The translations under genes were made by a program, and so were the position numbers. From positions 1,550,001 through 1,614,000 of the forward strand of contig CM068779.1 of the NCBI GenBank assembly GCA_035084275.1: DNA of 64,000 nt. Reading direction: 5' to 3'. Shown piece after piece: positions 261-52,952 of this stretch (position 1 is the first letter of the stretch; the number at the start of each line of letters is the position of its first letter). Source of the stretch: Hydrolagus colliei (taxonomy: Eukaryota). The notes below the pieces were generated by a model, which was given only the letters and a program-made list of their open reading frames with translations, searched no databases and was not told where the DNA came from.

Positions 261-1600
261 TAATTACAGTTTAAATTGTTATCTAGAGGTAAGTTCTGAA
301 TGATGGTCAGCCAGACCAATAATACAGCCATTAATCTTACTTTTCTCAGTATGTTTAAGCATTCTTTTGTAGGAGGCTAATATTTTGTTCCCTGGGTACT
401 TCGTCAAGCTATTTGTGAATATTCCAATTAATATTCCCAGTTGCACTGAAGATTATAGGAACTATGTTTGTTTTACATTGTCACAAATGTCTGCAATCAA
501 ATTGTAGATTGATATATTTCCTGATTTTCTTTTTTTTTCACGCAATGAGTTGTTCGAATCTGGAATGCATTGCCTGAAAGAGTGGTGGAGGTTGATTGGA
601 TAACTTTAAGAGAGTGGTTATCTGGGGAGGATAAGTTTGCGGGCTTATGCGGAGAGAGCCGGGGAGTGGGATTGACTTTGAATAGCCACATTATTCTACA
701 TACATAATACATAATAACAACAACTTGGATGTATATAGCGCCCTGCACCCCGAAAGGAATCTCAGAGCGCTTCCCAATAACGGAGCCCGGGGCCGAGCCA
801 GTGAGAGGGGGAAGTCAGTGACCAAAAGCTTGATCGATAAGAAAGGTGTTTATCCAAGACCTGAGGTAGGAAGAGAGGGGGCAAGATGAAGGAAGTGAAG
901 AAGGGAGTTCCAGAGCCTCGGGGCGTAGTGGCTGAAGGCATGGCAACCGATGGTAGTGCGGAGGATTCGGGGGACAAGGAGGCGGCCAGATCAGGTGGAG
1001 CGAATGTAATGGGTGCTGTTGTGAGGAGAGAGGAGGTCAGAGATGTAAGTGTAGCAGAGTGGAGGGATTTAAATACAAGTGTGATGCCTCGGTTCCATAC
1101 GGGTTCGGGTAGGTGGAGGAGTTGGGAACCATTTGACTGAAGATGTTGATGAGAACCAAAGAGTATGGCTTCTGTCATATCAACATTTAGCGAAAGGAAA
1201 TTTGCGCTCATCCAGCCCATGATGGCTGACACAACATCAGGGGACTAGGGGGTCGCAAAGTGAGGTGGAAAAATTTAGTTGGGTGTCATCCGCATACACG
1301 TAGAAGTATTCCTGTGTCTGTGGATGACATCCCCAAGAGGGAGCATATAAATTAGGAAGAGGAGAGGGCCAAGGATCCTTGGGGTACCTGACAGGTAACT
1401 GGGTGAGAGCGGAAGGAAAGGCCGTTTGTGTTGGCGGTTTGTGAGGTAGGACTCAAGCCAGACTCAAACCAGGCGAGTGCGGTCCCACTGATAATACTAC
1501 ATTATTATATATAGTTATACGTATTGGCACTAGTGTTTGTGCCTATGCTGCTTAATCCCATACACTCTATTCTGAAAGTAATTTGAAAGCTTTTGAAAGT

Positions 1601-4288
1601 GGCAATTTTAGTTAAGGACTCAGTGACTGCCTTAGAAAGGAACGAGGTGGAAGAAGGACTAAAAACCGAATCTATCTGGTTAGAAATGAGGAATAAAAAA
1701 GGTGCAGTTACACTGTTAGGGGTATACTATAGACCACCAAATAGTGGGGAGGAGATAGACAAGCAGATCTGCAAGCGTATCACGGAGAAATGCAGAACTA
1801 ATAGAGTAGTGATAATGGGTGACTTCAACTATCCCAACATAGACTGGCAGAATAGTAGAGTAAAGGGCAAGGAGGGAGAAGAATTCCTGAAGTGTGTGCA
1901 GGACAACTTTCTTGATCAGTATGTTTCCAGTCCAACGAGGAAAGAAGCATTGCTGGATCTAGTTTTGGGAAATGAGGTAGGGCAAGTTCAACAGGTTTCT
2001 GTAGGTGAGCATCTAGGGAATAGTGACCACAATATCGTTAGATTCAGAATAATTATGGAAAGGGATAAGGAACGATCACAGGTGAGGACACTCAACTGGA
2101 AAAGGGCTAATTTCAATGAGTTGAGGTGGGACCTAGCCAAGGTGGATTGGAAAGAAAAATTGGCAGGTAAGACAACTATCGAGCAGTGGGCAGCGTTCAA
2201 AGAGGAGATAGTTCAGGCACAGGTCAAAAGCATCCCCACAAAGGTGAAATGTAAGGCATCCAAACCTCCCTGGATGACTAAGGAAATTGGGGCCAAAATA
2301 AAACAAAAAAAAGAGGCTTATGATAAGTGTCAGGCTCAAAATTCAGAAGGGAACAAAGCAGAATATAGGAAGTGTAGGATAGAACTAAAAAAGGAAGTTA
2401 GAGGGGCAAAGAGACTGCATGAAAAACAATTAGCGAGTAAGATTAAGGGGAACCCTAAGGTTTTTTACCAACATATTAAGAGTAAAAGGTTGGTCAAGGA
2501 TAGGGTGGGGCCAATTAGGGACCTCGGAGGAAATCTCATTGTGGAGGCAGAGGGCATGGCTGATGTACTGAATGAGTACTTCGCCTCTGTCTTCACAAAA
2601 GAAAATGATACAGCCAATGCCATGGTATTAGAGGAGAGGGTAGGAGAAATGGATAGAATAATTATAACCAGAGAGGAAGTGCTAAAAAGGTTGACGTCGC
2701 TCAAGGTGGATAAGTCACCTGGTCCGGATGGGATGCACCCTAGGTTACTAAGTGAGGCACGGGAGCAAATAGCAGGGACTCTGGCCACGATCTTTCAATC
2801 TTCCTTGGACACAGGGGTCGTGCCAGAGGACTGGAGGATAGCTAATGTTACTCCCTTGTATAAAAAGGGGCAGAAGGACAAGCCTGGTAACTACAGACCA
2901 GTCAGTCTAACGTCGGTAGTTGGCAAACTTCTAGAGTCCATAAATCAGGGACAAGGTAGATCTTCACTTAGAAAGATATAGGCTAATAAAGGACAGTCAA
3001 CATGGATTTGTTAAAGGCAAATCTTGCCTTACAAATCTGATAGAATTTTTTGATGAGGTAACGGAATGGGTGGATAATGGTAGCGCAGTTGATGTAGTTT
3101 ACATGGACTTTCAAAAGGCATTTGACAAAGTGCCACATGAGAGACTTATTATAAAATTAAAGGCCCATGGCATAAAAGGGACAGTGGCAGCGTGGATCCA
3201 CAACTGGCTGCGAGACAGAAAGCAGAGAGTTGTAGTGAGCGGCTGTTTTTCAGATTGGAGGGAAGTGAGCAGTGGTGTGCCACAGGGATCAGTTTTGGGA
3301 CCATTGCTGTTTGTAATCTACATCAATGATCTGGACTTGGGTGTACGGAGTACAGTTTCCAAGTTTGCAGATGACACTAAGTTAGGGAGAATAGTAAACA
3401 GTGAGGAGGATAGTAGCCATCTGCAAGAGGATATAGACAAATTGGTAAAGTGGGCAGACACATGGCAGATGAAGTTTAACGCAGAGAAGTGTGAGGTGAT
3501 GCATTTTGGGAGAAGAAATGAAGGGAGGCAATATAGGCTAGATAGTACAATTTTAAATGGTGTAAAGGAACAGAGAGACCTGGGGATTTGTGTTAGTGAC
3601 TCGTTGAAGGTGGCAGGACAGGTAGACAAGGCTGTTAAGAAGGCATATGGGATACTAGGCTTTATAAATAGGGGTATAGAGTACAAAAGTCAGGAAGTGC
3701 TGACTAACCTCTATAGGACTTTGGTGAGGCCTCAGCTGGAATACTGTGTTCAATTCTGGTCACCACACTACAGAAAGGATGTGAAGGCATTGGAAAGGGT
3801 ACAACGAAGATTTACTAGGATGGTGCCAGGATTGAGGGACTTCAGCTATGAGGAGAGGCTAGATAGGCTAGGGTTATTCTCTCTGGAGCAGAGAAGATTG
3901 AGGGGAGACCTAATAGAGGTTTATAAGATCATGAGGGGTTTCGACAGGGCAAATAGAGAAAAACTATTTCCACTCGTGGGTGAATCTGTGACTCGTGGTC
4001 ACAGATTTAAAATAGTTTCAAGGCGAAGTAGAGGGGAGCTGAGGAGAAATTTTTTCACTCAGCGAGTTGTTGGAATCTGGAATGCATTGCCTGAAAAGGT
4101 GGTGGAGGCTGATTCGATAACAACTTTTAAAAGGGAATTAGATCTTTATTTAGGGAGAACGGGTCTATTAGGCTATGGGGAGCGGGCAGGGCAGTGGGAT
4201 TGAATCGCTCTTTTCAAAGAGCCGGCACAGACTAGATGGGCCGAATGGCCTCCTTTTGTGCCGTAAAATTCTATGATTCTATGATTCT
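1601..4288 (+). mobile_element. 5'-truncated CR1-clade LINE (APE endonuclease + RT), one 1-bp frameshift near 2942
   Basis: ORFs 1593-2981 (GDFNYP, SDH, PGNYRPVSL) and 3070-4203 ([14 protein letters not shown]); (attctatg)n tail; aagt duplication at 1597-1600 and 4289-4292; empty site at 51263-51266. Confidence 0.97.
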
Positions 4289-4754
4289 AAGTCTGGCATT
4301 GCTTTCCTTATTTGTCAAACCCCCCAAAAAATTTTTGAGGTCAGCCTGGCATCCAAACTCCAGCAGTTACCCTTTGGGTTCTGATGCCTTGGCGCATGCC
4401 TAATGCTCTCCGGAATTAGAAAAAGAGGATGCATCCAACCAGGAAGTGAGTGTGCATTCCATTCCAATACAGTAATTGGGAATTTTCATGTGTAATTGGT
4501 GTCATGGAACTGTCAGTCTGATTTAGATCATGGTGTACAGGGTGATGGGTTTCCGCATGTTTCAATACACCCAGCTGACCAAAAGACTTTTCATGTCAAA
4601 AGGTCTAAAAGTGTTTCACACGAGAGCAGAGCCCAGACTGCACTACTGCAAACCGTAATTAATTCCTTCTGCAAAACCTAGATTTACCATCAGCGAACAC
4701 AGAAGTGGTTCCAATGTCCTATTTAATCCTTTCAGAATACCAGCCTCAAAATAC

Positions 4755-7195
4755 CAACCAACCTCTCATCATTTCTTAAACTGTTTGCCTTCACCAAATC
4801 TTAAAGATGCTTTCCTATAACGAGCAGTAAGTATAGGATCCAAATTATTAGTTCATTGTTGGATTACTTTTTCAGGGGTAAAAATTCATTCCAAAAATAA
4901 TACTAATAATTTGATCACTCCACAGGATGAAACCATTGACAAGCTTCTCTGTCCACACACACACACATACACACACACAAACACCTCTGTCTACCCAGTA
5001 CGTAGTAAGTAGGAACCAGATTGTTGGATTGCTTTTCTGGGGGTAACAATCCATTCAAAAATAACTAATAATAATAATAATTTGGTCATTCAATCCACAG
5101 ATGTTTGTCGGACGTCTCTGTGCACAATCACCCACAAAACACATACACTTTACAGCATGTTCTATAAAGCGCTTTGAGACGTTGTGAAGACATGATAAGG
5201 CCTTTTATTATAATCTATTCTATGATCATTCCCAATTCACATCTGTTGAGATTGATTGTCATACATTAACACCAATAATGATACAGTTCACCCGAGTGTA
5301 AATTAATTTTCTTGACTTTCGTATTCTTGGTGATGATTCATGATTTGAACAAAATGATTGTAACTCAATGAGCCCAACATTAGCCCATGGTCTGGGCTGA
5401 CACACCATTGCAGTGTTGGGGAGTTTCACAATTATCAGAGTTCCTAAATATCTGGATTAAACTACAGACTGCTCTGTCTGTCCAGATGGAATTTAAAGAT
5501 CCCACAGCACTGTTTAGAAAGAGAAGGGAATTTCTCTGGTGTCCCAACCAAGAATCCCCCAAATAAAATTGGTCTCTTGATTCATGCTGTTTGCAGATGT
5601 CACTGTTTTCAAAGTGGCTGGCATATGGCGTATAAATTTCACCCACAAATATACAGTCAATTCACTTTACAATGAAGTGCTTTGAGACATCGATTAGATG
5701 TGAAAAACTCTATATCAAAATACTAGGAGTATTATTTTTAGAAATATACAGCAACCACATTTTACAATAAATCCTATGAAGCATTGTGAAATGTCTCAAT
5801 GACTTGATAAGACATTATATAAAATGCAAGGAGTATTTAGTGCATTATAAGGACAACACAGGCCAAATGGTCTCCTTCTGTGCTGTAATATTCTATGATC
5901 CAGTAATGTTCTTTGAACAGTAGAATAGAATGGACAAATAGGAAACTGCTTTTTAATAATAATGCTTGCATTTGATACAGCAGCTAATGACATTGTTGTG
6001 CCTTCTCAAAGCACACCATGGAGTAAATAGATTGGGTATTTTATAATAATCCGTCAAAAAAAACCCACAATACTATAATAAAAATTGGACATTTCAATCC
6101 ATGACTGTTTGTGGGACACGGCTGTGCGCAATTGGCTAAGGAGTTTCACCACAAATGTACAGTCAATTCACATTACAGTATATTTTGTGAAGCGCTTTAG
6201 ACGTCGATACGTTGTGAAAATGCTATATCAAATACAAGGATTCTTCTTATTTTGTGGGTGAAACACAGCAGCCAATTGCGCACAGCAGTGTCCAACACAC
6301 TTTCAAGGATTGATTTGGAGGCAATCACCAACAAGTGGGTTCCTATTTACTGCTAGGTAAACAGTGGTGTTTATGTGTAATAAGAACATTTACCTAAGGT
6401 ATCCCCTCACCCAGAAATCAAAACCATGTTCTCGAACTTGTCAAATTGCAAATAATGGTACTTATTAAAGATATGTGGCCACATGTGTCAAAAGCACTAA
6501 ATTTCACTACTATAATTAAATGCCTTTGAGAGAGAAACTAGGAAAATAACTCATACTGTACTGTATATCGATATGGCAGAAACATTATTTCTCTACTTTA
6601 AGCAGCTGAATGACATGAAATTGAACCATCAGATCATGAGCAGCTCATCCAGTTGTCTGGATATAAAACATTTTGTTTGAACATGTGAATATGAGTCTTC
6701 TCCCTAAACATGGTGACCAGGTTAGCGACAAATACCCTGGAACATGAATGGCACATAGATAGGTTATTGTTAAACAGAACTGTTACTGTACTTACCCAGC
6801 ACTGTCAGGGTGATTTTCGCTGATGCCTTTTGGTTAGTGGCTAAGGTCATGCTTACTGTGTACTCTCCAGCGTCAGTATAATTCACAGATTTTAGCTGGA
6901 GAGACCTAGTGGGGAGTAACACAGCCCGGTCTTGGTAAATCGGGTTTACACTTCCACCTCCATTTGGAAACCAGTTAAGAACAAGCGCAGTCCCGAAACT
7001 CCAGTCACCATTCGTCACCTCACCAGACGGTTTCACTGTAAGCTCAGCTGTACTCCCGACAAGGGCTGTAATGGGATTGTGTGGGACAGTGATGGTGAAC
7101 TGGGCTGTAACTGGAGGGAGAGAAGATCACATTAAGGACAGCGAGGCATCGGCTGCATACACATCTACACAGTCCGTCCTGACTCTCTCTCTCTA
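4755..7195. repeat. Direct segmental duplication of ~38755-41190
   Basis: Near-identical sequence and matching spurious ORFs (5380-5646 vs 39381-39647). Confidence 0.93.
6796..7110 (-). CDS. CEACAM-like IgV N-domain exon, type N1 (gene presumably continues left of window)
   Basis: ctccag acceptor, gtaag donor, 315 nt phase 1-1; VTAQFTITVPHNPITALVGSTAELTV...WSF...DRAVLLPTRSLQLKSVNYTDAGEYTV...ITLTVL; no canonical V disulfide. Confidence 0.88.
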
Positions 7196-7290: not shown

Positions 7291-7342
7291 CCGCACATAC
7301 ACAGCAGCAAAGGGCAACTACCCCGAGCAGTGCTGTCTGCAT
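7291..7342 (-). CDS. Signal-peptide exon MQTALLGVVALCCCVCA
   Basis: ATG, hydrophobic 17 codons, G|gtgagt phase-1 donor, 180-nt intron to N exon. Confidence 0.88.
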
Positions 7343-7350
7343 CCTGGCCT

Positions 7351-7410
7351 CAGCCTGTGTCCTGGTCTCTGGTCACTGAGCAGCCTGTGTCCTGGTCTCT
7401 GGTCACTGAG
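7351..7410 (-). repeat. 30-bp tandem repeat in 5' UTR (2 copies)
   Basis: cagcctgtgtcctggtctctggtcactgag x2; copy number differs in paralogs. Confidence 0.95.
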
Positions 7411-7468
7411 CAGCCTGTGCTGGTTACACTCAGTCAGTCAGTAGAGTTTTCTCTTCTCCCAGCTCTGC

Positions 7469-16363: not shown

Positions 16364-16419
16364 CTTTGCTGAGGCATTCTGGTAGATATTGAGTCCATCA
16401 TTGGGTGTTGAAGAGATTC
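16364..16419 (-). CDS. Cytoplasmic exon C1 (GISSTPNDGLNIYQNASAK)
   Basis: cattctctcagcag NAGNAG acceptor, aag|gtcagg donor, 56 nt phase 1-0. Confidence 0.72.
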
Positions 16420-17169
16420 CTGCTGAGAGAATGACACCATTATCTAATATAGTCTCTCATTACTGGTTCATATATTTTTTATAACTGATAATATCAATTG
16501 AAATTGCCTGTCCATGTCGAGGACTTTCTTCCTTCAATGTGAAGCGGAAATCCAATACCTTGATCACATAGATCCGTATGGACAGAGATCTTGTTTGTGC
16601 GACTGACACTGTGAGCACTTAGAATAATTCTTGCATTTAATAAAGCAATGATCCTTGCATTTGATATAATATGATATAATATGTTGTGAAGTAAGGAAAC
16701 TTACCCAACATTTTTCCCTGCTGGGAATTGAACCCAGGTTCTCTTGCTTGCGAGTTGAGTGCCCTAACCATTGAACTATAGGAATTCTACCTGTTATGCA
16801 GGAACCCATTAAACCAACTGTACTCAAAAAATGATGGGTATTGGTCAGATATATATATATATACACATTCACTCAGGGTAGTGTCCCAGAGCGCTTGACA
16901 GTGACGGAGTCCGACGATGAGCCAGGGAGTGGGAGTTAAGGGGATGTGGGACAAACAGGAGGCCGGAGCCAGCTGAGTGGAGGGAGAAGGTGGTGGAGTC
17001 AGAGATCGGTAGGGAGGTGCGAGTGCATGAAGGGATTTGAGACGAGTGAGAGATTATTTAAGTTGATCTCTACAGCACTTGTTGTATCAAATATTATATT
17101 TTCTATACCAAATAAGTATAGATTTTTTTAAATGAAACAGTTTCACAATACTGGCTGGGGCCAGTGATG

Positions 17170-17890
17170 TGCAAAGGGAATTGAGGGAAAGTCTGGCTGG
17201 AGACATGGTGAAAGAGGTATATTTTATCACTTCTAGGCTCGACTTCAGGAACTCTCTCCTCGTCGGTCTCCCCAGCTCCTCCCTTCACAGGCTGCAGATC
17301 ATTCAGAACTCTGCAGCTTATGTACTTTCCTATACCACATCACTCCCACCCTCGCCCATCTCCACTGGCTCCCCGTCACCCAGAGGATCGAATTCAAGAT
17401 CCTTGTCCATACTTTCAAGGCCATTCACGGCCTTGTCCCCACCTATATCTCTGACCTCCTGTCTCCCTATCAGCCCTGCCCGCCCCCTCCATTCAGCAGG
17501 CTCAGGCCTGCTCTACGTCCACCGCCCTAACCGCCCAACCATCAGCGGCCAGGCTTTCAGCCTCTCTGCTCCCACACTGGAACTCCATCCCGCAGCCCCT
17601 CTGCCTCGCTTCCTCCCTTTCCTTTAAAGCGCTCTGAGACGCCGTCCGGCGTGGAGGGCGCTATATAAATCGTTGTTGTTGTTGTTTCCTCCTTCGAGGC
17701 CAGTCTCAAGACCTTCCTCTTCGACCGCGCCTTCGGCTCCCCCACTAACTCTTCCCCCTCTCCCACTCTCCTTCCCCTTCCCTCTACCCCAACCCACTCC
17801 TCCCCGCTCGGGTCCCGACCTGACTGTTCAGCGCTTTGAGACGTCCTCCCGACGTGAAAGGCGCTATATAAGTGCAATTTTGTTGTTGTT
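17170..17890 (+). mobile_element. L2 LINE 3' fragments (representative of >25 L2 remnants in the window)
   Basis: [16 protein letters not shown] RT C-terminus and tail cagcgc..gacgtcctcccgacgtgaaaggcgctatataa(ttg)n; others at ~9425-9850, 10380-10685, 24590-25210, 27515-28010, 36235-37030, 37370-37890, 44810-45590, 53290-53870. Confidence 0.9.
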
Positions 17891-18548
17891 ATTTTGAGCT
17901 GGTGATCTGGATTGAGAGGAGGAGAGGGCGTAAGTGAGTGGGACCTGGGAGTGCAGTACCAGAGAACAGTTACCAAGTGGCTGAAAGCCGACTCGGTGAT
18001 TTGAGATATTTAAAAAGATGAAATAATCTACAGAATAATAAGATCATTGTGGAGTCCTGTAGCTCAGTGGTTAGAGACCTGGGTTCGATTCCCAGCAGGT
18101 CAGGGTGAAATCTTGGGCAAATTTCCTTACTCCTCACACCTGATAATAATCCCTCAAGAAACAAAACAATAATAAATTGGTAATTTCAATTCACGAGTGT
18201 TTGTGGGACACTATTGCAATTATCTGCCGGGTTTCATCCACAAATGTACCGTTAATTCACTTTACAGTGTGAAGCACTTTGAGACGTCTCAAAGACAGGA
18301 TAAGTAATGCAGGGATTATTATTAATTACTTGATATTTAATACTGGTTTCATATATTAGCTTTGGATATTGTCAATGAGGCATTTTATGAGGTAAAGCTG
18401 GATCTATGCTCCGCAAACTCTGTCCTGATCTCCATCCTTCGTGAGGCGCTGTACCAAATGTAAGAATTTATTATATGATTATTATGGATAACACAGTCAA
18501 TATATTATTATTGTTTCACCCCAAATAAAAATGATATACAATAGTTAC

Positions 18549-18680
18549 CGGGATCTCTTGCAGAATACCAACACTTTGCGTAGACGCCAACAGCAATGAG
18601 GAGAATGAGGGTCACAAACAATATAACACCTAGACTGATTGCTGCAATGGTCCCTGTCTGATCCTGAGGTGAAGTAAATT
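18549..18680 (-). CDS. Transmembrane exon (EFTSPQDQTGTIAAISLGVILFVTLILLIAVGVYAKCWYSARDP)
   Basis: tttttcctctccag acceptor, g|gtaact donor, 132 nt phase 1-1, ~23-aa hydrophobic span. Confidence 0.9.
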
Positions 18681-19015
18681 CTGGAGAGGAAAAATTAAAA
18701 TAGATAATAATGCACATTAACATTCATATACTGTAATATCCTTGCAAGGATTATCATAGTAATCCTTGCATTTGCTGTAGCATCTCAATTTATCTTCAAG
18801 TCATCTCAAAGGGCTTCACAGGATAAACTGTAAATTTGAAGGCGAGTCAGAGGATCTTTAAAGTCAATCCGTTCAGTGATAGGGAGCCAGTGGAGCCTGG
18901 CGAGGGTTGGGGTGATGGGTGTACAAAGTTTAGTGTGTGATGGGGAGCCTGGCGAGGGCTGGTATGGAGTATGGGTGAGTATGTATGTATAAATCACAGC
19001 TGTTATTGTCTTCAC

Positions 19016-19273
19016 CTGTCACACTGAAGTCCACACTGGTGTTGATGAATTTGCCAGTCACTTTGTTGTGAGCCAAACATATGTATTTCCCACTCTGGTT
19101 CCAATTAATGTTAGCGATAGTATGCGCAGGTCCTGTGTCTAACACAGTGTTCCCTCTGCACCATTTATACTCCGCAGCAGGGCTGGATGCCACAGAACAA
19201 TACAGGATAATAGTTTGCCCCAAGAAAGCTGTCACTGGGCTAGGGGGCATAATGATGGAATTTTCTGGTCCAT
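19016..19273 (-). CDS. CEACAM-type IgC2 B domain exon (B2)
   Basis: YGPENSIIMPPS...LYCSVASSPAAEYKW...GKYICLAHN; 258 nt phase 1-1. Confidence 0.92.
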
Positions 19274-19646
19274 CTGTGTAGGACATAAGAAGAGAGAAGC
19301 GGATTATTGACAACTTTAAACATCAACGTTTAAAATAAATGATCCAAATGTTTTATTAAATAGTAATCCTTATATTTGATATAGTGCCTGATCATGTCTT
19401 CAAGATGTCTCAAAGTGCTTCACACAATAAACTGAAGGTGCATCGACTGTTTTGTTGGAAAAATGCGGCAGCCAATTGCACACTGCAGTGTCCCACACAC
19501 AATTGTGGATTGAAGTGCCTCATGTACTATTATTTCTATTGTTGCCCTGGGCAAAGCGATCCGCCCATCGACCAACCACTGGGAACCTACTTACTGGTAG
19601 GTAAACAGAGGCATGTGGGATATTGAAACTTGCCAAATTGATGTGG

Positions 19647-19920
19647 AGTCCTGTAGTTCAGCGGTTAGTGACTCACTTCGCAAGCAATAGGACCTGGGTT
19701 CAATTCCCAACTAGAGCAAAACCTTAGACAGGTTTCCTTACTGCACGTACACACCATGGACATGCAGTCAGCGTAGGCAGGGTAGGCAGTGCCTACTTGT
19801 GAAAATATTTACTCGCCCACAAATATATACAGTCAATTCACTTTACAGTATATTGTGTGAAGCGCTTTGGGATGTCAATAAGATGTGAAAAGCGCTATAT
19901 CAAATGCAAGGATTATTATT
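19647..19920 (+). mobile_element. tRNA-derived SINE with Deu-like core and L2-type tail (abundant young family)
   Basis: A-box tagttcagcggttag, B-box gggttcaattcc, tail agcgcttt..aaagcgctatatcaaatgcaagg(att)n; other copies 18052-18320, 28862-29155(-), 32718-33040, 54030-54310. Confidence 0.85.
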
Positions 19921-19942
19921 ACACACAGCCGTTTGTACTTAC

Positions 19943-20218
19943 AGACAACCTCGATGTTGAATGTGGATGTCTCATTGCTGACAGGGTTTTGAACCAAACA
20001 GCGGTAATCCCCAGAGTCCTTTCTGTTCACCAGCGTTATGGTCAAGGTATCATTGTTGGGAGATACGAGAATCCGCCCGTTGCTCTCGAGAGCTTGGTTA
20101 TCTTTGTACCACACTCGGGAGTAAATGAGGCCAGAGGCGTCACAAGTCAGGGACACACTCTCAGTACCTTCCATTGGGTTTGAAGAGTTGCCCAGAACTC
20201 TGATATTGGAGATTTGTT
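19943..20218 (-). CDS. CEACAM-type IgC2 A domain exon (A2)
   Basis: EQISNIRVLGNSSNPMEGTESVSLTC...W.KDN...NDTLTI..VNRKDSGDYRCLVQNPVS; 276 nt phase 1-1. Confidence 0.92.
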
Positions 20219-20757
20219 CTGCAAATAAGTAAAAAGAAAAGGCAAGTCTTTTGCGGAACTCCTCAGGAGTAGTGGTTAGATCACTCGCCTCTCAAGCCAG
20301 AGGACCTGGGTTTGATTCCCAGGCATATTCACCCACAAATATACAGTCAATTCACTTTCCAGTTTATTCCATGCACAAAAATTGCGTAGCTTGCCGTTGA
20401 CCCTTCTTGCTGCTTGTCAAGCTAGGACCCCCCTATCCCGATAGTTAGGGCAAGAATAACAACAACCAACAAAATTAGATTTGTATAGCGCCTTTCATGT
20501 CACGAGGACGTCGCAAGACCTGAGCTGGGGATTGTGTGAGGGTAAGGGTGGAGGACAGCGGGGATGAACTGAATGGAATTAATCCTTGCCCACAGTGACT
20601 GGTCTACCCTTCCAGGACGAGCTGATGAGCCAGACTGGGCTGTACTGTCAAATAAAGAAGTGAAAATGACATTAAAAGAATTACTATTTGATACATTATT
20701 ATCATGACTTACCGAAAGATAAGGTCTAGATTGTACCTAGTTAGTATCATCACTTAC

Positions 20758-21021
20758 CTATAACTTGGATTTCACTGGTCGCCTCATTATACATTAGTGT
20801 TATATTGTTATATGCCTGACAAGTGTAATTTCCAGCGTTGATCATAGAAATATTACTGATGGTAATTTGTGAATAGGGTTGTTGAAGAGAGGAACTATTG
20901 AAAAACCACTGAAATTCAGAGACTGGATTGGAGACAGTGGAACACTTCAAATCAAAGCTTGCTCCCAAACCGTGAACTGTTCGATCTGGGACGATGGATA
21001 GAATGGGTATTTCTGGTCCAT
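20758..21021 (-). CDS. CEACAM-type IgC2 B domain exon (B1)
   Basis: YGPEIPILS...LKCSTVSNPVSEFQWFFN...NAGNYTCQAYN; 264 nt phase 1-1. Confidence 0.92.
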
Positions 21022-22059
21022 CTGGAACAAACAAAATAATAGTCTGTCTCACAAGTCTAGACCTAAAGGCTTAAGTAGAACATCAACACTTGTGTTGTGT
21101 CTGTCACACAAACTCTTAACAATGAGGAGCTCCCCTCAGTATCCTTAACCCCCATCACACCAGCTCTAGCCAGGCTCTATCACACACACTAAACTCTCTC
21201 CCACATCATCCCAGCCCCCGCCAGGCTCCACTGGCTCCCTATCACACAATAAACTCTGTACCCCATGACACCAGGCTCCCAATCACACACTAATCTCCAT
21301 ACCCCCATCAACCCAGCCCACACCAATCTCCACTGGCTCCCAATTTCTGAACGGATCGACTTCAGGATCGATCCTCTCTCGTTTTCAAATCACTGTGTGC
21401 CTGGTACCTCCCTACCTATCGAACTTGCTCAGCTCCCACTCCACCAACCGCTGCCTCCACTCAGCTGTCTCAGGCCCGTGTTCGTTCCCAGACTCTCCTC
21501 TCCACCATCGCTGGCCGTACCTTCAGACACTACACCCCCAAACTCTGGACTCTCGTCCCTCAATCCCTTTGCCTTGCCCCCTCCTTCTCCTCTGTTGTTA
21601 ACTGTCAGCTCAAATTCCTTGGGCAGGTAAGAGAGTGGAAGGTGAGCAGGTTGGGGGTGGTAGGGAGGTGTCTGGTCGTGAAGTGATTTGCCGGGGAGTG
21701 TGAGGAGCTTGGAAGCAGGAAGCAATTTTTCACACAAAAGGGGTTTAGTGGAACTTTCTCTCTCTTCCAAAAGACTGCGAGTTAGGGCTAGATCCAATTC
21801 ACAGACTCAAGAAGGAGGTGGATAGATGTTTGTTAGGTCAGGGTATCAAAGAATGTGGGGCAAAGGTGGCTAATTGGAGTTGAGATATATAGATCAGCCA
21901 TGATCTAATAGAATAGTGGGACAGGCTTGAGGGGCTGAATGGCCTCCTTCTCTATGTTTCTGTGAAACAATTTGTTCAGCACCAACGAAGCTTGGCAGGA
22001 CTTGGAGGTGATCGATGTGTGCTGTGTGATCCAGCTTTGGTGACACAGGAGGTAGAGTT

Positions 22060-22310
22060 TAGAATCAGGTGGACTTTGTGTAGGGGTAGTGAATGTATGG
22101 AATTCTTTACCCCAAAGGGATGTTATTGCTCAGTCCTTGAACATATTCAAGACTGAGTTAGATAGATTTCTCATTTATAAAGGGATTAAGGGGTATGGGG
22201 ATAAGGCAGGTAGCTGGAGTTAGAGTAGAACATCAGCCATGATTGAATGGCGGGGCAGGCTCGATGGGCTGAATGGCCTACTCCTGCTCCTACTTCTTAT
22301 GTTCTTATGT
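22060..22310 (+). mobile_element. CR1 3' fragment
   Basis: gatgggctgaatggcctactcctgctcctacttcttatgttcttatg tail; similar fragments ~530-680, 10010-10330, 11720-12080, 21790-21960. Confidence 0.8.
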
Positions 22311-22495
22311 TATGTGAAGCCAAGCGACTGGTGACGCGGGCATTGCAGAAATCAAGGCGGGAGGTGGTGCAGTGTGGAGAAGGGTTACACCAGCGAGGTG
22401 AGGTGTGTGGTGTGATTGCAAACATGGCTTTAACCATAGCCAAGCTTACCGCGATCACATTATATATAATTGAAGCTGCTCACAGTGATACTTAC

Positions 22496-22774
22496 AGTTC
22501 ACATTCAGAACAAATGGACTGCTTGTGCTGTCACTAACAGCGTTGAAGACATGGCAAGTGTACATCCCACTGTCAGACCTCAAAACTCCAACTAGGGTTA
22601 GTGTTTTGTTATCCAGACTTAAACTAATCCTGTCGTCGTAGATTATCGTTTTATTATCCTTAAACCACTCGTATACAGCATCCATTTGCAGTGCAGTGCA
22701 GGTCAGCAACACAGTGTCATTGTATTCAACCGGGGCAGGTTTACTGGAGACAATGGTAATGTTGGAAACAGTTT
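22496..22774 (-). CDS. CEACAM-type IgC2 A domain exon (A1)
   Basis: ETVSNITIVSSKPAPVEYNDTVLLTC...YEWFKDN...DNKTLTLVGVLRSDSGMYTCHVFNAVS...LNVN; 279 nt phase 1-1. Confidence 0.93.
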
Positions 22775-23781
22775 CTGTTAAAACACAGGAAAGTATTTGG
22801 ATTATGTATATTAAACAGCAGTTTGAAACTCAAGTCATCTGACGATACTTCTTATTTCACCCCATAATCCTGTCGATTCACTTTACAGTGTATTCCGTGA
22901 AGTGCTTTGAGACATTTGAGACGCGATAAAGGTACGATATCAAATGCGTAAATGTTATGTTACGTTTCTGGAAAGAAAACATATCTATTGCTTATGTGGC
23001 CCCCCACCCCCTTCCTCAATTGTGTAGCTCAGCGGATGGAGTCCTGTAGCTCTGTGGTTAGAGCACTCACCTCGCAAACAAGAGGACTCAGCGAAATGCT
23101 CTGACGCACTCCAGAATCGCTTGCGAATGCTCTAACTGCTGAGCTGTAGGACTCGATAGTAGAGCTGAACTGGGGCGAGAAGGTTAACGTGAAGGCAGCC
23201 ACAGGTGAAGTGGAAAGTCTTAAGGTGATGTGAAGGCGTAATGAGGCAAGGTGAAGCAGGCAGTGCCAGAGGTTCAGGGAGAGTGTGGGTGGAGGCATGA
23301 CCACCAATTGTAGAGAGGTGAGGTTGAGAGACGTTAAATAACTGAAGACTGGACGGAGGCAGCCAAGCGAAATGGGAAGGTAGAGGATTTGGGTGTAACC
23401 AGGTAATAAGGAAGTCAAATGAGATTATAATTAGCTAAGTCCTCGTCAGCCAGGATCCTTTCACGATTTTAAACTTAAATTTAAAACGTCCCGTTTGTTG
23501 GCCTTCTCAACACCTCCCTCCATAGGCTGCAGATCATCCAGATCTCTGCAGAACCATGTTCTCTCCCACACTAAGCACCGTGATCCCATCTCCCCCATTT
23601 TCACCTGACTCCATTGGCTCCCCATCACCCAGAGGATTCAATTCAAGATCCAGGTCCTCACCTTCAAAGCCCTCCATGGACTTGTCCTGCAAACTCCCAA
23701 CTACCGACCAACCTGACCGGGCTTTTAGCCTCTCTGCCCCACACTCTGGAACTCCATTCCACAGTTCCTATGCCTCGCTTC

Positions 23782-24018
23782 CAGCCAATTGCACCGACCT
23801 CAGTTGGAGGGTGGCGTCAGGTAATAATAATTTAATCCGCGGCGCATACTCAGCACTTGGTGTGACGACTGTCCGAACCCAAGTGACAATTTTTTTCCCA
23901 CTAAAACTCCACCTGCCTTCAGCTGCCACACCAGAGAGTCTGACTATGAAGTCGGCCGTGCCTCCAACAGGAACATTAATGGTATCCTGTGGTAGAGTGA
24001 CGGTGATTCCCGATGTAA
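23782..24018 (-). pseudogene. Truncated divergent IgV N exon (F/G strands and donor replaced by an L2 fragment)
   Basis: VTSGITVTLPQDTINVPVGGTADF...LQLRSVQLA then L2 sequence and TAG at 23768-23770; 23-nt branch/pyrimidine segment deleted before acceptor. Confidence 0.8.
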
Positions 24019-24159: not shown

Positions 24160-24211
24160 CCGCACATACACAGCAACAAAGGGCAACTACCCCGAGCAGT
24201 GCTGTCTGCAT
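24160..24211 (-). CDS. Signal-peptide exon of the ITAM-bearing gene
   Basis: MQTALLGVVALCCCVCA, intact gtgagt donor. Confidence 0.8.
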
Positions 24212-25998
24212 CCTGGCCTCAGCCTGTGTCCTGGTCTCTGGTCACTGAGCAGCCTGTGTACCTCTCATACTCATTGCCCTCTCTGCTGTACTGAGTGCTA
24301 TATCTGTATCAGGAAATGCAATGGGGGATATTGCTCCTGTCGTTTACAGCCAGAACGATCGATCGTCAAGTGATTAGTTATCAACCAAATATGTAAATGA
24401 ATAGTTTGTGAGCTGAGTCACTGCTGGAAGGCCACACAGCGCAGCTCTCTGGGTTAGCTGTGCACCACATGAGGAGAAAGTACCTACTGTATTGTTAGTG
24501 TTATTACAATGTGTCTGATATTCTGTCAGTCTGGCTCAATGGGTAATATTTATATTAACCAGAAAAAAATGTCTTCCTTGTGATACATTACCTAAAGCCA
24601 CTGAAGTCCTCATCCAAGCCTTCATTACATCACAGCTTGATTATGCAAATGCCTTGCTGGCCAGCCTTCCCAATTCCTCCCTCCACAGGCTGCAGATAAT
24701 CCAGAATTCTATGGCTTGTGTCCTCTACCTTTCCAAACTCTGTGACCCCATCTCCCCCCATCCTTGCCCTACTTCATTGGCTCCCCATCATCCAGAGGAT
24801 ACAATTCAAGATCCTGGTCCTCACATTTAAAGCCCTCTCCACAACCTCGCCCCACTCTACATCCACGGCCGCCTATTCCCTTACCAACCTGCCCGTCCCC
24901 TTCGTTCAGCTGGCTCTGGCCTGCTGCACGTCCCCCGACACACTCCCCCAACCATTGCCGGGGAAGCCTTCAGTCACTCTGCCCCCAACCTCTGGAACTC
25001 CAACCTGAAGTCCGTCCGCCTCGCCCGCTCGCTGGCCTCCTTCAAGTCTCACCTCAAGACTTTCCTCTTCGATGGACCCATCGGCAACTCCTTCCTCCTC
25101 CTCCCTGCACCGTCCTCAGTTTGGGTCTGAAGCAGTAACTGTCTAGCGCTTTGGGACGCCCCCTGATGTGAAAGGCGCTATACAAATGTAATTTTGTTTT
25201 TGTTGTTGTTATCACATCTTTGAGACGTCTCAAAGTGCTTCACAAAATGTACTGTAAAGTATAGTGACTGTCTATTTGGAGGGCGAAATGCAGGAGCCAA
25301 TTGCACACGGCAGCAAATAGTTCCTGCCTCACATCTGTTAAAATAACAATAATCCTTCCAATTGATAAAGCACTTTTCACATCTACTAGATATCTAAATG
25401 TCAGAACTATTTTTAATGATGACAAACACAATTGTAAGAGGAATAAATTCTCAGCTAACACTGCTTACATTTTCCCCAACAATTCCTCAAACCCTAATTG
25501 GTCATTCAATCCACGTCTGTTTGTGGGGACGCTGCTTTGCGCAATTGGCTCCCGTACACCCCCACCCCTCCAAAATGTACAATCAATTCACTTTACAGAA
25601 TATTCTGTGATGCGCTTTGAGGCGTCTAGACAATGTGAAAAGCGTTATGTCAGTAAACGTCCCAGGATATACTGTAATATTAATAGACAACATATTTTGT
25701 GGAGGAAACACAGCAGTCCCACAAACAGCCGTGTGTTAAGTGACCAAATTATCATTACTGGTATTCCTTTTCCAGGCTCCTGTGCTTTGTTCAAACCATG
25801 TTTTGACTTGAAATGTCTGAGACATTATATATCAGTGGCCAGGAAACACACTGCAGTCAGTCCCCACCCACTTCCCACTCACTCCCTATTTGCTCAATAA
25901 GTGCAGAGCTGGGAGACGATAAAACGTTACTGACTGACTGAGTGTAACCAGCACAGGCTGCTCAGTGACCAGAGACCAGGACACAGGCTGAGGCCAGG

Positions 25999-26050
25999 AT
26001 GCAGACAGCACTACTCGGGGTAGTTGCCCTTTGCTGCTGTGTATGTGCGG
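25999..26050 (+). CDS. Signal-peptide exon, plus-strand gene
   Basis: MQTALLGVVALCCCVCA G|gtgagt. Confidence 0.88.
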
Positions 26051-26243: not shown

Positions 26244-26555
26244 TTACAGCCCAGTTCACCATCACTGTCCCACATGGTACCATTACAGTCCCTGTCGGGG
26301 GTACAGCTGAGCTTACAGTCAAAGCGTCTGGTGAGGTGGGGAGTGGTGAATGGTATTTCGGCAATGTGCTTGTTTGTCGTTGGCTTCTGTCATCAATAAG
26401 TATCTCCCCTTCTTACCAAGACCGGGCTGTGTTACTCCCCACCTGGTCTATCCAGCTAAAAGCTGTGAATTATACTGACTCTGGGGTTTACACTGTGACC
26501 ATGCTCTCACACACTGGCACCAAGGCCACAGCGACAGTCACCCTGAAAATGAAGG
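26244..26555 (+). CDS. CEACAM-like IgV N exon, type N2
   Basis: 312 nt phase 1-1; VTAQFTITVPHGT...EWYFGNVLVCRW...DSGVYTVTM...VTLKMK. Confidence 0.88.
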
Positions 26556-29500
26556 GTAAGTAACAGTTCCGTTTAACACTAACTTATGTATGTACCATTC
26601 ATTTGTGACTAACCTGGTCACCAAGTTTAGGGAGAAGATTTAAATTAACATCGTCACACAAAATAATAATAATCCTTTCATTTGATATTGCGCTGTGTCT
26701 GTGTGGGTGAGTCTGTCAGTCTCACGATCTCTCAGTTAATGATAATAATGATGATAAAGCTTGCATTTGACAAAGTGTTTTTCACGCCTTCTAGACGTCT
26801 CAAAGCGCTTCACAGAAGATGCTGTAAAGTGAATTGACTGTATGTTTGTGGGCGGAACGTGGCAGCCAATTGCGCACGGCAGCGTCCCCCACAAACAGTC
26901 GTGGGTTGAAAATGACCAATTTTATTATGGTGGGTTTTTTTGGGCGGATGAGAACTTGCCCAAGGTTTGGCTCTGAGCTGTCTGGATTCGAGAAGGATCC
27001 AACAGGAAAACAAGAGTATCAGGTTTCAGTCTGGCTGGGTTGGTGCCAAGTGAGTCAGAATGCTGTGGTCCCATTTGGGGACTTCAGCTGTTCATAGGCT
27101 GAGATGCCAATGCAGTGCTCAGCTAGATCAGCCCTTGGCCAGACATTTAACACTGTGAGCCCCTCTGCTTGTTTTAACATTTTGTGGAGGATAAATGTTA
27201 AGTATCCAGACAAATGGACAAGCGGCTCGTGATCTAATGGTTGATTTGCCTGTAATGCTTAAAGCAGAGAAATAATGTTTCTGTCGTACAGATATACAGT
27301 AATTGTGTTATTTTCCTAGTTTCTCTCTCATGTCCTGAAGGTTTTTAACAATTCTACTGGAATATAGTTCCATAATCGCATGTGGCCACTTGTATCTCCA
27401 ACAAGTAACCATTATTAGTGTTCCACAGAGCCCTCACCTCGCAAGCGAGAGGATCTGGTTTGATTCCTGGCTTGGTTTATAATTTACCAATGTCACCAGA
27501 ACGGCTAACAGTCATGAACAACAACAAAATGACACTTGTATAGCGCCTTTCACGTCAGGAGGACGTCCCAAGGCGTTGGACAGTCACTGCTTCAGACCCG
27601 AGCTGGGGTCAGGGGTGGGTGGGAAATGGGGGATAAGGAGTTGCCGATGGGACCATCGAAGAGGAGGGTCTTAAGGTGAGACTTGAAGGAGGCCAGGGAG
27701 GGGATGAAGCGGAGGGACTTCAGGATGGAGTTCCAGAGGTTGGGGGCAGAGTGGCTGAAGGCTCGCCCACCAATGGTTGGGTGGGTGGGTCGAGGAACGT
27801 GGAGCAGGCCAGAGCCTGCTGAACGGAGGGGCCGGCGAGGTTGGTAAGGGATAGAAGGTCACGGATGTAGGGGTGGGGGGGGGGGGGGGGGGGGGCGAAG
27901 TTGTGGAGGGCTTCAAATGTGAGGAACCGGATCTTGAATTGGATCTCTAGATGATGGGGAGCCAATGGAGTCGGGCGAGGATGGGGGAGATGGGGTAGTT
28001 TGGAATAACAACTTCCATTTACACAGTGCAGTACACAGAGTGCTCGGCAGTGATGAAGTCTGACCACAAGTCATGGGGGAGAGGGAGTGGGGAGCTGGCC
28101 ATTAGCAAGCTCAAACAGGGAAGGTCTTTATGGGAAGTTGAATATAGAGACACACAGGGCAGAGAGTTCCAGCGTTTTAGGGCATAGTGGCTGAAGGCAC
28201 GGCCCACTGATGGTGGAATGGAGGGGCACAAGCCACAAAAAAGGAGGCTGGAGCCAGCCGAGTGGAAGCAAGCGGGCGGTGAAGTGGGGGCTAAGCAGGT
28301 TGGGGAGGTAAGGAGGGAATCCAATGATTTGAAAACGGGTGAAGGGATGTGTAAATCAAAGTTGAAAGCACAGTCGCTAGTGTATTTGCCTTGGGTTTGA
28401 TTCCCAGGCAGGGCAAACCTTTAGACAAGTTTCCTTACTCGACACAGACTGTGTGTGGGTTCTCTGTGTCTCTGTGTTCCAGTCAGTTGCTGAGTCTCAG
28501 AGGAACCCAAAGAGGAAACAGTTTGTTTGAGGTAAAGGTGCTGTTTCTCTGTTAATAAAGATATAACTCGCAGGTCTGGGTCTTCTGGGTTCCTTAATTC
28601 CCATGTTGTTTTTGCTTTTGCTCTCGTGCTGTGACTGTCAGCAGCAGAGAGGAACAAGAGGCTGTGAGTTCAGCTCTACGCGTCCCCTGTAGTTCGACTG
28701 TTTTCCTGTATTTCTGGACAAATAATGAGATGGAGTAGGAGGCCTGGGCTTTAGTTGTTGTCTGAAAGCGCTCTGACTTCTGACCGTGGCCAACGATGGA
28801 GCAGGTAGGGCTTTGCCCCCCACATTGTGCTCTGCCTGTCCAGGGCTGTGTGTGTCTATGTGTGGAGATAATAATAATAATCCTTGCATTTGATATAGAG
28901 CTTTTCCACGTCTTCTAGACGTTTCAAATCGCTTCACAGAATATACTGTAAAGTGAGTTAACTGTATATTTGTGGGTACAATGCGGCAGCCAATTGCGCA
29001 CAGCAGCGTCCCCACAATCAGCCGTGGATTGAAATGCAATTTTAAAAAAGTGATTATTGTCAGGCGTGTGGAGTAAGGAAACTTGCCCTTGCCTGGAGTG
29101 GAACCCAGGTCCCTCACTTGTAAGGCGAGTGCTCATAACCACTGAGCTACAGGAGCTTCACAAATAGAGACTCTGCCACTCGCAATGCTGCCTTGCTGTT
29201 GGCTTCGGGAACATGGGGAGAGAGTATCCACATTGAGGCTTCACTTGATTATCTCCAAAGACTTTCCTCCAGGATAATGTTGAGTCCAACCCAGGCAGGC
29301 TTTACGTCATCGGTTAAAGGAGCGGCAGTTGATGGAACGAATGGCCTTTTCTCAATCCGTGCTTTCTTTAAAGTTATTTAGGTGAATTTATAATCTTAAA
29401 GCAATCCAGGAGAATTGACTGTATATTTGTGGGCGAAACGCGGCAGCCAAATTGCGCACAGCAGTGTCCCACAAAGAGTCACCGAAATGGGGCCAGGAGA

Positions 29501-40779: not shown

Positions 40780-41094
40780 CCAGCACTGTCGGGGTGATTT
40801 TCGCTGATGCCTTTTGGTTAGTGGCTGAGGTCATGCTTACTGTGTACTCTCCAGCGTCATTATAATTCACAGATGTTAGCTGGAGAGACCAAGTGGGGAG
40901 TAACACAGCCCGGTCTTGGTAAATCGGGTTTACACTTCCACCTCCAGCTGGAAACGAGTCAACAACAATCACAGTCCCGAAACTCCGGTCACCACTCCTC
41001 ACCTCACCAGACGGTTTCACTGTAAGCTCACCTTTACCTCCGACAGGGGCTTTAATGGGATTGTGTGGGACAGTGATGGTGAACTGGGCTGTAA
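40780..41094 (-). pseudogene. Decayed N1 exon lacking its leader
   Basis: Acceptor AG>AA (41095-96), W>R, W>S and L>P changes, leader region deleted at ~41190. Confidence 0.8.
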
Positions 41095-43526: not shown

Positions 43527-43837
43527 AGTTGATATCGAGAACATATGGAAGGCTGGTGCTGTTACTAACAGCGTTGTAGGCATAGCATGTGTAATTCCCA
43601 CTGTCAGACCTCAAAACTCCAGCTAGAGTCAGGCTGTTGTTATCCACAATTAAAACAATCCTGTTGTAAAGGCGCTCTATAAATGTAAATTGTTGTTGTC
43701 ATAGCTGATTGGTTTATTGTCTTTCAACCATTGATATGAAACGTCTGTCCCTGATGCATTGCACGTCAGCCCCACAGTGTCATTATATTCTACTGGCTGG
43801 GTGACATTGGGGGTGACAACAATATTGGAAACAGAAT
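43527..43837 (-). pseudogene. IgC2 A-domain exon disrupted by a 26-bp L2-tail insertion
   Basis: DSVSNIVVTPNVTQPVEYNDTVGLTC...SYDN[insert]RIVLIVDNNSLTLAGVLRSDSGNYTC; paralog of 22496-22774. Confidence 0.88.
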
Positions 43838-52900: not shown

Positions 52901-52952
52901 CCACACATACACAGCAGCAAAGGGCAAATACCCCGAGCAGTGCTGTCTGCAT
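52901..52952 (-). CDS. Signal-peptide exon (MQTALLGVFALCCCVCV)
   Basis: Intact ATG and donor; four 30-bp repeats upstream at 52961-53080. Confidence 0.85.

Follow-up and report, generated by a model that had tools for sequence, protein, structure and literature searches.

Rapid replacement in N-domain exons of a putative CEACAM-like receptor gene cluster of a holocephalan fish

Locus and exon inventory

The window analysed here, a 64,000-nt (64-kb) stretch of Hydrolagus colliei contig CM068779.1 (positions 1,550,001 to 1,614,000), appears from its exon content to belong to a holocephalan (chimaera-type) cluster of CEACAM-like receptor genes. Six copies of an exon for a cysteine-less IgV 'N' domain, labelled A to F, were returned when the domain encoded at 6796-7110 was searched against the whole window with tblastn, and five of them (A, B, D, E and F) were accompanied by their own leader exon encoding the same signal peptide. 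Exons A, B and C were designated N1 type and exons D and E were designated N2 type. The main observations were a duplication of cassettes, an excess of replacements in the N1 exons with a ratio of non-synonymous to synonymous rates (dN/dS, or omega) above 1, a clustering of replacements in the segment comprising the C, C' and C'' strands (C-C'-C'') and a repetition of the pattern in a second species, Callorhinchus milii. The explanation that we consider probable as a whole is that of a CEACAM-like cluster in which the N1 exons have been under diversifying selection and the N2 exons form a mosaic.

Exon A (6796-7110, minus strand) had been taken for an N (IgV) exon in an earlier sequence-only reading of the window, and this was borne out as it is a phase 1-1 exon with an AG acceptor, a GT donor and an intact open reading frame (ORF) encoding a 104-residue cysteine-less IgV-like domain that runs TAQFTITVPHNPIT...KITLTVL. 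The leader exon of A (7291-7342, minus strand), located 180 nt upstream of the N exon, encodes MQTALLGVVALCCCVCA plus 1 nt and is followed by a GT donor at 7290-7289. Exon B (52393-52704, minus strand) is intact and one codon shorter than A, and its leader exon (52901-52952, minus strand) carries one V->F change. The third N1 copy, exon C (40780-41094, minus strand), was missing from the earlier account, as was the truncated sixth exon F. Exon C is without a leader, its acceptor has changed from AG to AA, and core residues of its domain are altered (W36R, W46S and L101P, the last at alignment column 102), and it is probably no longer functional. The N2 exons D (26244-26555, plus strand) and E (54858-55169, minus strand) are both intact and are paired with leader exons at 25999-26050 (plus strand) and 55354-55405 (minus strand) respectively, the leader of D being head-to-head with that of F. 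Exons A, B, D and E all retain an ATG, signal peptide and splice sites together with the intact ORF.

Exon F (approximately 23790-24018, minus strand) includes strands A to E only, its 3' part having been replaced by an interspersed repeat followed by an in-frame stop, while its leader exon (24160-24211, minus strand) encodes the same signal peptide as the others. The repeat that cuts F after the E strand is present in many copies elsewhere in the window, and the lost 3' part of the exon was sought behind the inserted repeat and was not found there. Constant exons are located downstream of F in the region 16370-22775 (minus strand) including IgC2 exons (22497-22775, 20756-21022, 19935-20219 and 19014-19274), a transmembrane exon (18547-18681) and the first cytoplasmic exon (16370-16417). 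A search of the window for transmembrane and cytoplasmic exons like those of the C. milii CEACAM4-like and CEACAM1-like genes found those of the F gene only. An isolated IgC2 pseudo-exon between B and C (43522-43838, minus strand) was matched by two tblastn pieces in different frames, indicating a frameshift.

A perfect 30-bp tandem repeat, CAGCCTGTGTCCTGGTCTCTGGTCACTGAG (100% matches), is located immediately before the leader ATGs and varies in copy number, with 2.3 copies before the ATG of A (7351-7419), 4.3 copies before the leader of B (52961-53089), 3.3 copies before the leader of E (55414-55512) and approximately one copy before the ATGs of D (near 25960-25990) and F (near 24220-24250). 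A related repeat was also present ahead of the C. milii leaders, and the repeat may be a promoter or 5' untranslated region element. Exons A, B and C are located in copies of one duplicated segment, and A and B were placed in a segmental duplication of approximately 7.5 kb because the block pairs (1-1430 with 45953-47386 and 4289-5255 with 51263-52221) are 97% identical. A degenerate leader-like relic, ATGCTCCTTTCATTTGATATTGCGCTGTGTCTGTGTGG followed by GTGAGT, was observed in the intron after D (26673-26720), after E (54368-54330) and upstream of C (approximately 41420-41370), in each case with a reading phase mismatched to the N exon. Relics of this kind suggest that the ancestral array was a tandem series of leader and N units.

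Relationship to the CEACAM family

The exon plan fits the CEACAM family, with five 52-nt leader exons that end in phase 1 at a GT donor, 312-315 nt N exons bounded by AG and GT, and F-gene IgC2 exons that join in phase 1. Of the CEACAM plan, the IgC2, transmembrane and cytoplasmic exons were observed downstream of the truncated exon F only. The N domains resemble those of CEACAMs in having neither canonical Ig cysteine, and in A the two positions are held by V25 and V85; A is without any cysteine, and B, D and E each have one non-canonical cysteine at column 44. Pfam returned weak V-set matches for the N domains (E-values of 5e-7 to 4e-4) as well as I-set and Ig_3 matches. In an exhaustive protein search the highest scores went to proteins from sharks and rays in which 3-5 N-type domains occur in tandem, and the closest single-domain relatives were the C. 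milii CEACAM4-like and CEACAM1-like proteins, whose N domains were 57-59% identical and whose leader peptides were almost identical to that of the window. The IgC2 and transmembrane exons beside F gave 98 protein matches ranging from sharks to mammals, the best being from C. milii (78-81% identity), and nearly all were named CEACAM, these names being NCBI automatic names. The window itself was without any non-CEACAM gene.

Structural comparisons placed the N domain more broadly. A PDB profile search ranked B7-H3 above CEACAM1 and CEACAM6 and was not CEACAM-specific. The nearest Foldseek matches of the N-domain model were the IgV domains of TIGIT, PD-L1, nectin and CD48 (template modelling (TM) scores of 0.79-0.88), with a TM score of 0.85 for TIGIT and PD-L1 versus 0.67-0.72 for the N domains of CEA, CEACAM1 and CEACAM6, and identity to the CEA and CEACAM N domains in the Foldseek alignment was 15-19%. 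By its modelled fold the N domain is a generic IgV domain.

Two features of the related proteins were also of interest. The elasmobranch relatives (P0001, P0002, P0003 and P0006, from sharks and rays) are predicted to have 3-5 tandem cysteine-less IgV domains before the transmembrane segment, which is not a tetrapod CEACAM architecture as a single N domain is found there; these tandem domains may be real or may result from gene models that chain cassettes together. The tails of C. milii proteins (P0012, P0122 and P0123) include YSNL-x7-YENI, which resembles a tyrosine-based activation motif of immunoreceptors (ITAM), and longer forms also include TxYxxL and SxYxxL, which resemble the corresponding switch (ITSM) and inhibition (ITIM) motifs. 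The activating and inhibitory pairing typical of CEACAM3 and CEACAM1 may therefore already occur in holocephalans.

Replacement and silent change in the N1 exons

The sequence-only reading had proposed diversifying selection from a codon count of A against B and from the near-identity of the adjacent intron. The count was reproduced exactly, with 16 replacement codons, 2 silent-only codons, one 3-nt indel and 20 substitutions in 312 nt, and so were the 2 differences in 175 nt of intron 2. However, the intron contrast was one-sided, as A and B differed at 10 of 181 nt in intron 1, 2 of 54 in the leader and 19 of 255 upstream, and intron 1 was about as divergent as the exon. Since approximately three quarters of coding sites are non-synonymous, neither the 16:2 codon count nor the 25:6 count for D and E is in itself evidence of dN/dS above 1, and raw counts of replacement and silent codons plus one intron comparison can mislead.

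Nei-Gojobori estimates of dN/dS were 1.95 for A-B (17 non-synonymous to 3 synonymous differences, Fisher p=0.21), 7.2 for A-C (20 to 1, p=0.015) and 1.7 for B-C (20 to 4, p=0.23). Comparison with non-coding DNA was made against all alignable non-coding flank, much of it kilobases from the exon. The proportion of non-synonymous sites that differed (pN) was 7.3% for A-B against a flank divergence of 3.2% over 1549 nt (Fisher p=0.004), 8.6% for A-C against 1.8% over 2065 nt (p=2e-7) and 8.7% for B-C against 1.6% over 732 nt (p=3e-6), and N1 pN was in this way 2.3-5.3 times the flank divergence. The corresponding proportion for synonymous sites (pS) was 1.3-5.1% and was not significantly different from the flanks in any pair, with B-C borderline (p=0.06). 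In three-way alignments of A, B and C, 31 of 312 exon sites were variable versus 19 of 711 sites in the flanks (p=2e-6), and singleton rates were higher in the exon than in the flank for A (2.2% vs 1.0%), B (3.2% vs 1.0%) and C (3.5% vs 0.7%). The variable exon sites were distributed over codon positions 1, 2 and 3 as 8, 19 and 4 (p=0.003).

When the changes were polarised with D, E and C. milii they were mostly lineage-specific replacements, with 6-7 in A, 5-6 plus one silent change in B and 9 in C. The total for the trio was approximately 27-30 replacement versus 4 silent changes, and three different residues were found across the three copies at codons 42, 44 and 69. The derived N1 states differ from the states in D, E and C. 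milii and, being absent there, were not copied from any sampled donor; D, E and C. milii-like exons were accordingly rejected as conversion donors of these changes. Also rejected as causes of the N1 changes were CpG decay, since CpG-context transitions made up 3 of the 31 variable sites, and a transition/transversion shift, since the ratio in the exon was no different from that of the flanks. A one-breakpoint parsimony scan over all 15 five-taxon topologies found no topological conflict among the window exons (gain 0).

Codon models and the C. milii paralogs

Codon models M0, M1a, M2a, M7, M8 and M8a and branch models were fitted with our own code, in which M0 equals the IQ-TREE GY+F3X4 likelihood (-1530.892). 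For window exons A to E the M0 omega was 1.81 (p=0.011 versus 1), and the site models run on these exons were in keeping with the sequence-only reading in both the M1a-M2a comparison (twice the log-likelihood difference, 2dlnL, of 9.46, p=0.009) and the M8a-M8 comparison (p=0.001). Maximum likelihood (ML) branch estimates gave an omega of 3.2 for the N1 branches (p=0.012 versus 1) and 2.2 for the stem between N1 and N2 (p=0.05). After the ten codons with multi-nucleotide differences were masked omega was 2.26 (p=0.003), and that of the N1 branches was 3.4 (p=0.02).

The pattern was repeated, and was stronger, in C. milii. Five paralogs from this species gave an M0 omega of 2.4, and M2a assigned 24% of sites to an omega of 13 (p=1e-8). 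The C. milii M7 fit was at a local optimum (-722.5, below M1a at -719.5) which overstated the M7-M8 difference, and the M1a-M2a and M8a-M8 comparisons were relied on. For all ten exons the M0 omega was 1.63 and M1a-M2a gave a 2dlnL of 50.9 (p=9e-12) with 31% of sites at an omega of 4.8. The five C. milii cassettes had 0-2 differences in 260 nt of leader and intron 1 and 0-3 in 150 nt of intron 2, and flank divergence among the paralogs was 0-1.2% versus a pN of 3.5-10%. The pair Cm3-Cm4 had 13 non-synonymous differences, 0 synonymous differences and 0 differences in 410 nt of flank, and this replicate is the strongest single evidence that the phenomenon is real in the lineage. The one-breakpoint scan of the C. 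milii exons gained 4 steps, which was not significant (p=0.11).

Location of replacements on the domain

AlphaFold2 gave a confident IgV model from the ten-sequence alignment (mean predicted local distance difference test, pLDDT, of 94.8) with strands A' (13-15), B (21-23), C (31-38), C' (41-46), C'' (52-54), D (62-64), E (70-72), F (81-89) and G (94-103). The M2a posterior was above 0.95 at columns 37, 40, 41, 42, 44, 45, 48, 49, 51, 53, 69 and 105. Ten of these twelve sites are located in residues 31-54, which span C, C' and C'' (p=4e-6), and eleven are on the G-F-C-C'-C'' side of the domain (p=8e-4). Residues 31-54 also included 8 of the 16 replaced codons between A and B (Fisher p=0.0098), 11 of 25 in the N1 trio (p=0.006) and 13 of 25 in C. 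milii (p=0.0002), and variable codons were common to the sets from both species (p=0.04). The earlier statement that many changes fall in C-C'-C'' therefore holds for A-B at the level of strands and fails for D-E, where 7 of 25 replacements were in this segment with no enrichment (p=0.34). As in other IgV receptors, the variable C-C'-C'' side would be the ligand-binding face, and we infer this by analogy.

The N2 exons

Exons D and E looked much like the A-B pair at first count, and the 25 replacement and 6 silent-only codons given in the sequence-only reading were confirmed. The selection proposed from them was not: dN/dS was 0.84 by Nei-Gojobori (27 non-synonymous to 11 synonymous differences, dN 0.128, dS 0.153, Fisher p=0.75) and replacements were randomly placed. 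The polarised changes were 18 non-synonymous and 7 synonymous on the long branch to E and 8 and 4 on the branch to D, near the approximately 3:1 expected at an omega of 1, and the variable sites were evenly spread over the codon positions (14, 11 and 13). Diversifying selection, which extended in the original proposal to both classes, is thus retained for N1 and is not supported for the N2 pair on these counts and on omega estimates of 0.84-1.03. Judged by the refuting conditions that the sequence-only reading had set for itself, the proposal fails for D and E.

Divergence between D and E was confined almost exactly within the edges of the exon, where pS was 13.8% and pN 11.8%. The flanks differed at 4 of 251 nt in the leader and intron 1 and at about 2 of 84 nt in proximal intron 2, together 6 of 335 nt, where intron 2 had been realigned around a 30-nt indel to give 2 differences in 77-84 aligned nt. 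The silent divergence of the exon (11/80) was therefore approximately 8 times that of the flanks (p=3e-5), which argues for a mosaic or gene-conversion history. Within the exon, 7 differences were concentrated in 14 nt (D 26326-26339 vs E 55087-55074, GTCTGGTGAGGTGG vs AAATTATGGGGTGC) and change SGE to NYG; this patch looks like a micro-conversion or a complex mutational event as opposed to independent point changes.

Exon silent divergence in excess of that of the introns was a wider feature of the family. Cm1 differed from the other C. milii copies by a pS of 8-10% versus 0.5-1.2% in the flanks, N1 and N2 exons by a pS of 18-22% versus 3-5% in the leader and intron 1, and exons of the two species by a pS of 33-39% versus 9-13% in the leader and intron 1 and 18% in intron 2. 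The promoter, leader and intron 1 were 95-100% identical among paralogs and approximately 89% identical to those of C. milii. Because exon silent divergence exceeds intron divergence, the exon lineages would be older than their flanks, which are thus likely to have been kept similar across the family by concerted evolution, constraint or both. Of two look-alike exon pairs, one would then be under selection and the other a mosaic with an omega of approximately 1.

Repeats and assembly gaps

Large long interspersed nuclear elements (LINEs) are located between the cassettes at 1587-4200 (plus strand), 41564-42763 (minus strand) and 47465-50536 (minus strand), with ORFs of 464 and 419 residues, 400 residues, and 382, 266 and 423 residues, respectively, and reverse-transcriptase-like sequence. 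The remaining window was mostly LINE and short interspersed nuclear element (SINE) sequence. Towards the 3' end of the window, four runs of N (1386 bases in total) were present in 60234-63458 amid long low-complexity arrays of AG/AC.

Evolution of the cluster

The cluster probably evolves through duplication, decay and partial homogenisation of a repeated unit composed of the promoter-like 30-bp repeat, the leader exon, a short intron and the N exon. The promoter, leader and intron 1 stay near-invariant while the N exon, encoding a membrane-distal cysteine-less IgV domain, changes. In the young N1 copies replacements have accumulated at 2.3-5.3 times the rate of neutral DNA, mainly in the C, C' and C'' strands and loops, a pattern consistent with positive diversifying selection acting on what is probably the side of the domain that binds ligand. 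In the older N2 pair the flanks may have been homogenised or the exon imported, leaving an exon lineage older than its flanks and not a record of adaptive change. Positive diversifying selection on the N1 exons is supported with moderate strength by these comparisons. Since selection on protein sequence requires expression, we infer that the N1 domains are or were expressed.

Several points weigh against this reading. The sample is small (3-5 window sequences of 104 codons), and p-values obtained from the window by itself range from 0.001 to 0.012; by dN versus dS the A-B pair taken singly is not significant, and four phylogenetically independent pairs when pooled gave a pN/pS of 1.64 (p=0.052), a value lowered by D-E. 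The D and E tips had an ML omega of 1.03 (p=0.94). Site posteriors are naive empirical Bayes values from our own implementation and not Bayes empirical Bayes values from PAML, and the placement of sites is at the level of strand assignment as opposed to solvent exposure. The flank is partly non-neutral, as the leader and intron 1 differ less from C. milii than intron 2 does (9-13% vs 18%), with exon synonymous sites at 33-39%, although the A-C and A-B flank tests rest mainly on distal flank. Exon C was as replacement-rich as A and B despite its lost leader, its lost acceptor and the loss of two core tryptophans (9-11 replacements, of which 9 are clearly derived and 8 of these fall at codon position 2); either C was selected before dying or selection does not account for all of the excess. 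Family members located beyond the window may have acted as unseen donors of conversion. For A, B, D and E the window yielded no downstream IgC2, transmembrane or cytoplasmic exons; the distance from A to the window edge is only 6.8 kb, and gene models of C. milii extend up to 33 kb.

As to what drives the selection, a pathogen-driven process involving microbial adhesins or viruses would be the most likely candidate only by analogy with tetrapod CEACAMs, and an endogenous ligand or homophilic specificity fits the selection equally well. TIGIT, PD-L1, nectin and CD48 engage endogenous partners, and the same face mediates homophilic adhesion of mammalian CEACAMs. It is possible, therefore, that diversification arose from homophilic or heterophilic specificity among paralogs or from activating and inhibitory pairing and not from pathogens, as the modelled fold is nearer to these four proteins than to CEA, CEACAM1 and CEACAM6 and the C. 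milii relatives have both the ITAM-like and the ITIM/ITSM-like tails expected of paired receptors. However, such partners usually impose co-evolutionary constraint and not an omega of 3-13, and in tetrapods N-exon omega above 1 has been tied to the binding of microbial adhesins (PMC8860441, PMC13278318).

A mosaic history of the N1 exons as well, in which conversion or import of diverged whole exons between conserved flanks mimics exon divergence without adaptive substitution, seems doubtful. For the N exons of CEACAM genes, conversion has been amply documented (PMC8860441, PMC5112662), and a process of this kind would account for the exon-bounded divergence of D-E at an omega of 0.84 with its micro-conversion-like patch of 7 differences in 14 adjacent bases, for the high pS of Cm1, and for exon pS above intron divergence between N1 and N2 and between species. 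The N1 copies depart from this expectation, as their silent divergence equals that of the flanks, their excess is restricted to replacement sites and codon position 2, their derived states match no window or C. milii exon and no breakpoint was found among the window exons. The 13 replacements and zero silent changes of Cm3-Cm4 argue in the same direction, and diversifying selection is preferred for N1.

A related proposal concerns the use of the cassettes and not the cause of their divergence. Although we regard it as unlikely, the leader and N cassettes, each of which has a conserved promoter-like repeat, a leader and a splice donor of its own, may form a bank of variable first exons. In one form of the proposal the cassettes would be alternative 5' modules spliced over tens of kilobases to shared IgC2, transmembrane and cytoplasmic exons, for which the protocadherin and UGT1A clusters provide a model, and in another they would be a reservoir of donors for gene conversion into an expressed copy. 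The order on the minus strand from 55.4 kb to 7 kb is E, B, (C), (F), the constant exons and A, and the window has six N exons to one set of IgC2, transmembrane and cytoplasmic exons. The C. milii RefSeq model XP_042201647 (L001 10001-43109) skips a second leader and N cassette and an IgC2 exon and so connects with transmembrane and cytoplasmic exons 33 kb away. If the proposal were true, a promoter, leader and intron 1 that are near-invariant across species too, beside hypervariable N exons, would be a design feature.

Relaxed constraint, under which the cassettes are orphan fragments in neutral decay with an omega of approximately 1, is in our judgement quite improbable. The missing downstream exons of A, B, D and E are what it predicts, C and F are visibly broken, one IgC2 exon is frameshifted, the region is full of LINE copies, and the D and E tips show an omega of 1.03 with even codon positions and random placement. 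Neutral decay, however, predicts that pN, pS and flank divergence are equal, whereas N1 pN was a multiple of flank divergence and the N1 branch omega was 3.2; A, B, D and E have remained intact, and in annotated genes of C. milii the C-C'-C'' segment is likewise a hot spot. Exon-targeted mutation of a locally hypermutable sequence is very improbable since, although exon singletons reach 2-3.5% per lineage against 0.7-1% in the flanks with the apparently dead C included, a hot spot would lift silent sites as well, in contrast to the replacement-to-silent totals and codon-position bias of the trio, its flank-like transition/transversion ratio and its few CpG-context transitions.

Comparison with known receptor systems

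The N domains of CEACAMs are a classic example of receptors that evolve under pressure from microbes. To our knowledge, no microbial ligand has been described for any chondrichthyan CEACAM. In primate CEACAM1, CEACAM3, CEACAM5 and CEACAM6, omega exceeds 1 mainly at N-domain sites that line the interface for protein binding, selection is interwoven with gene conversion between paralogs, and N-domain variants alter adhesin binding (Baker et al. 2022; PMC8860441). These genes share with the window the order of a leader exon and then an N exon that encodes an IgV domain free of the canonical cysteines; they differ in that their adhesins (Opa, HopQ and others) are known and binding has been assayed (PMC8860441). 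The primate and window sequences are approximately 450 million years apart and the window exons are not assignable as orthologs of any single mammalian CEACAM. A recent duplicate of ruminant CEACAM1 that escaped concerted evolution, with an N exon diverging under selection while the rest was homogenised, provides another likeness, although it is a single mammalian paralog with expression data and the window holds several cassettes known from their sequence (PMC7042247).

The C. milii CEACAM-like genes (XP_042201647, XP_042202055 and relatives; loci L001-L004) are alike in leader peptide, promoter-like repeat, exon phases and introns, and their C-C'-C'' segment is hypervariable like that of the window. 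Nucleotide identity is 79% across the entire B unit, and for copy A it is 82-91% in the aligned segments of the promoter, of the leader with intron 1 and of intron 2. As their N domains are only 49-62% identical to those of the window, these are different genes. CEACAM genes have been recorded in cartilaginous fishes in reports that do not cover the forces acting on them (PMC5112662, PMC4079198, PMC13278318). Fast N-exon evolution of CEACAM receptors is already known in mammals, frogs and reptiles, and what is new here is its occurrence in holocephalans. Omega above 1 in the same exon and the same C-C'-C'' segment of two holocephalans would extend this mode of evolution to the base of the jawed vertebrates.

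The paired CEACAM receptors of Xenopus and reptiles resemble the window in their species-specific expanded clusters of ITIM and ITAM partners, in an N-exon dN/dS above 1 and in a head-to-head orientation that allows conversion, as is found for D and F (PMC5112662; PMC13278318). In Xenopus and crocodilians, however, the N exon is a conserved island between divergent introns owing to exon-restricted conversion (PMC5112662; PMC13278318). The window is the inverse of this pattern, as its leaders and introns are near-identical and the N exon is the divergent island, and the holocephalan cassettes would therefore be an inverted counterpart to the conversion-homogenised N exons of those paired receptors.

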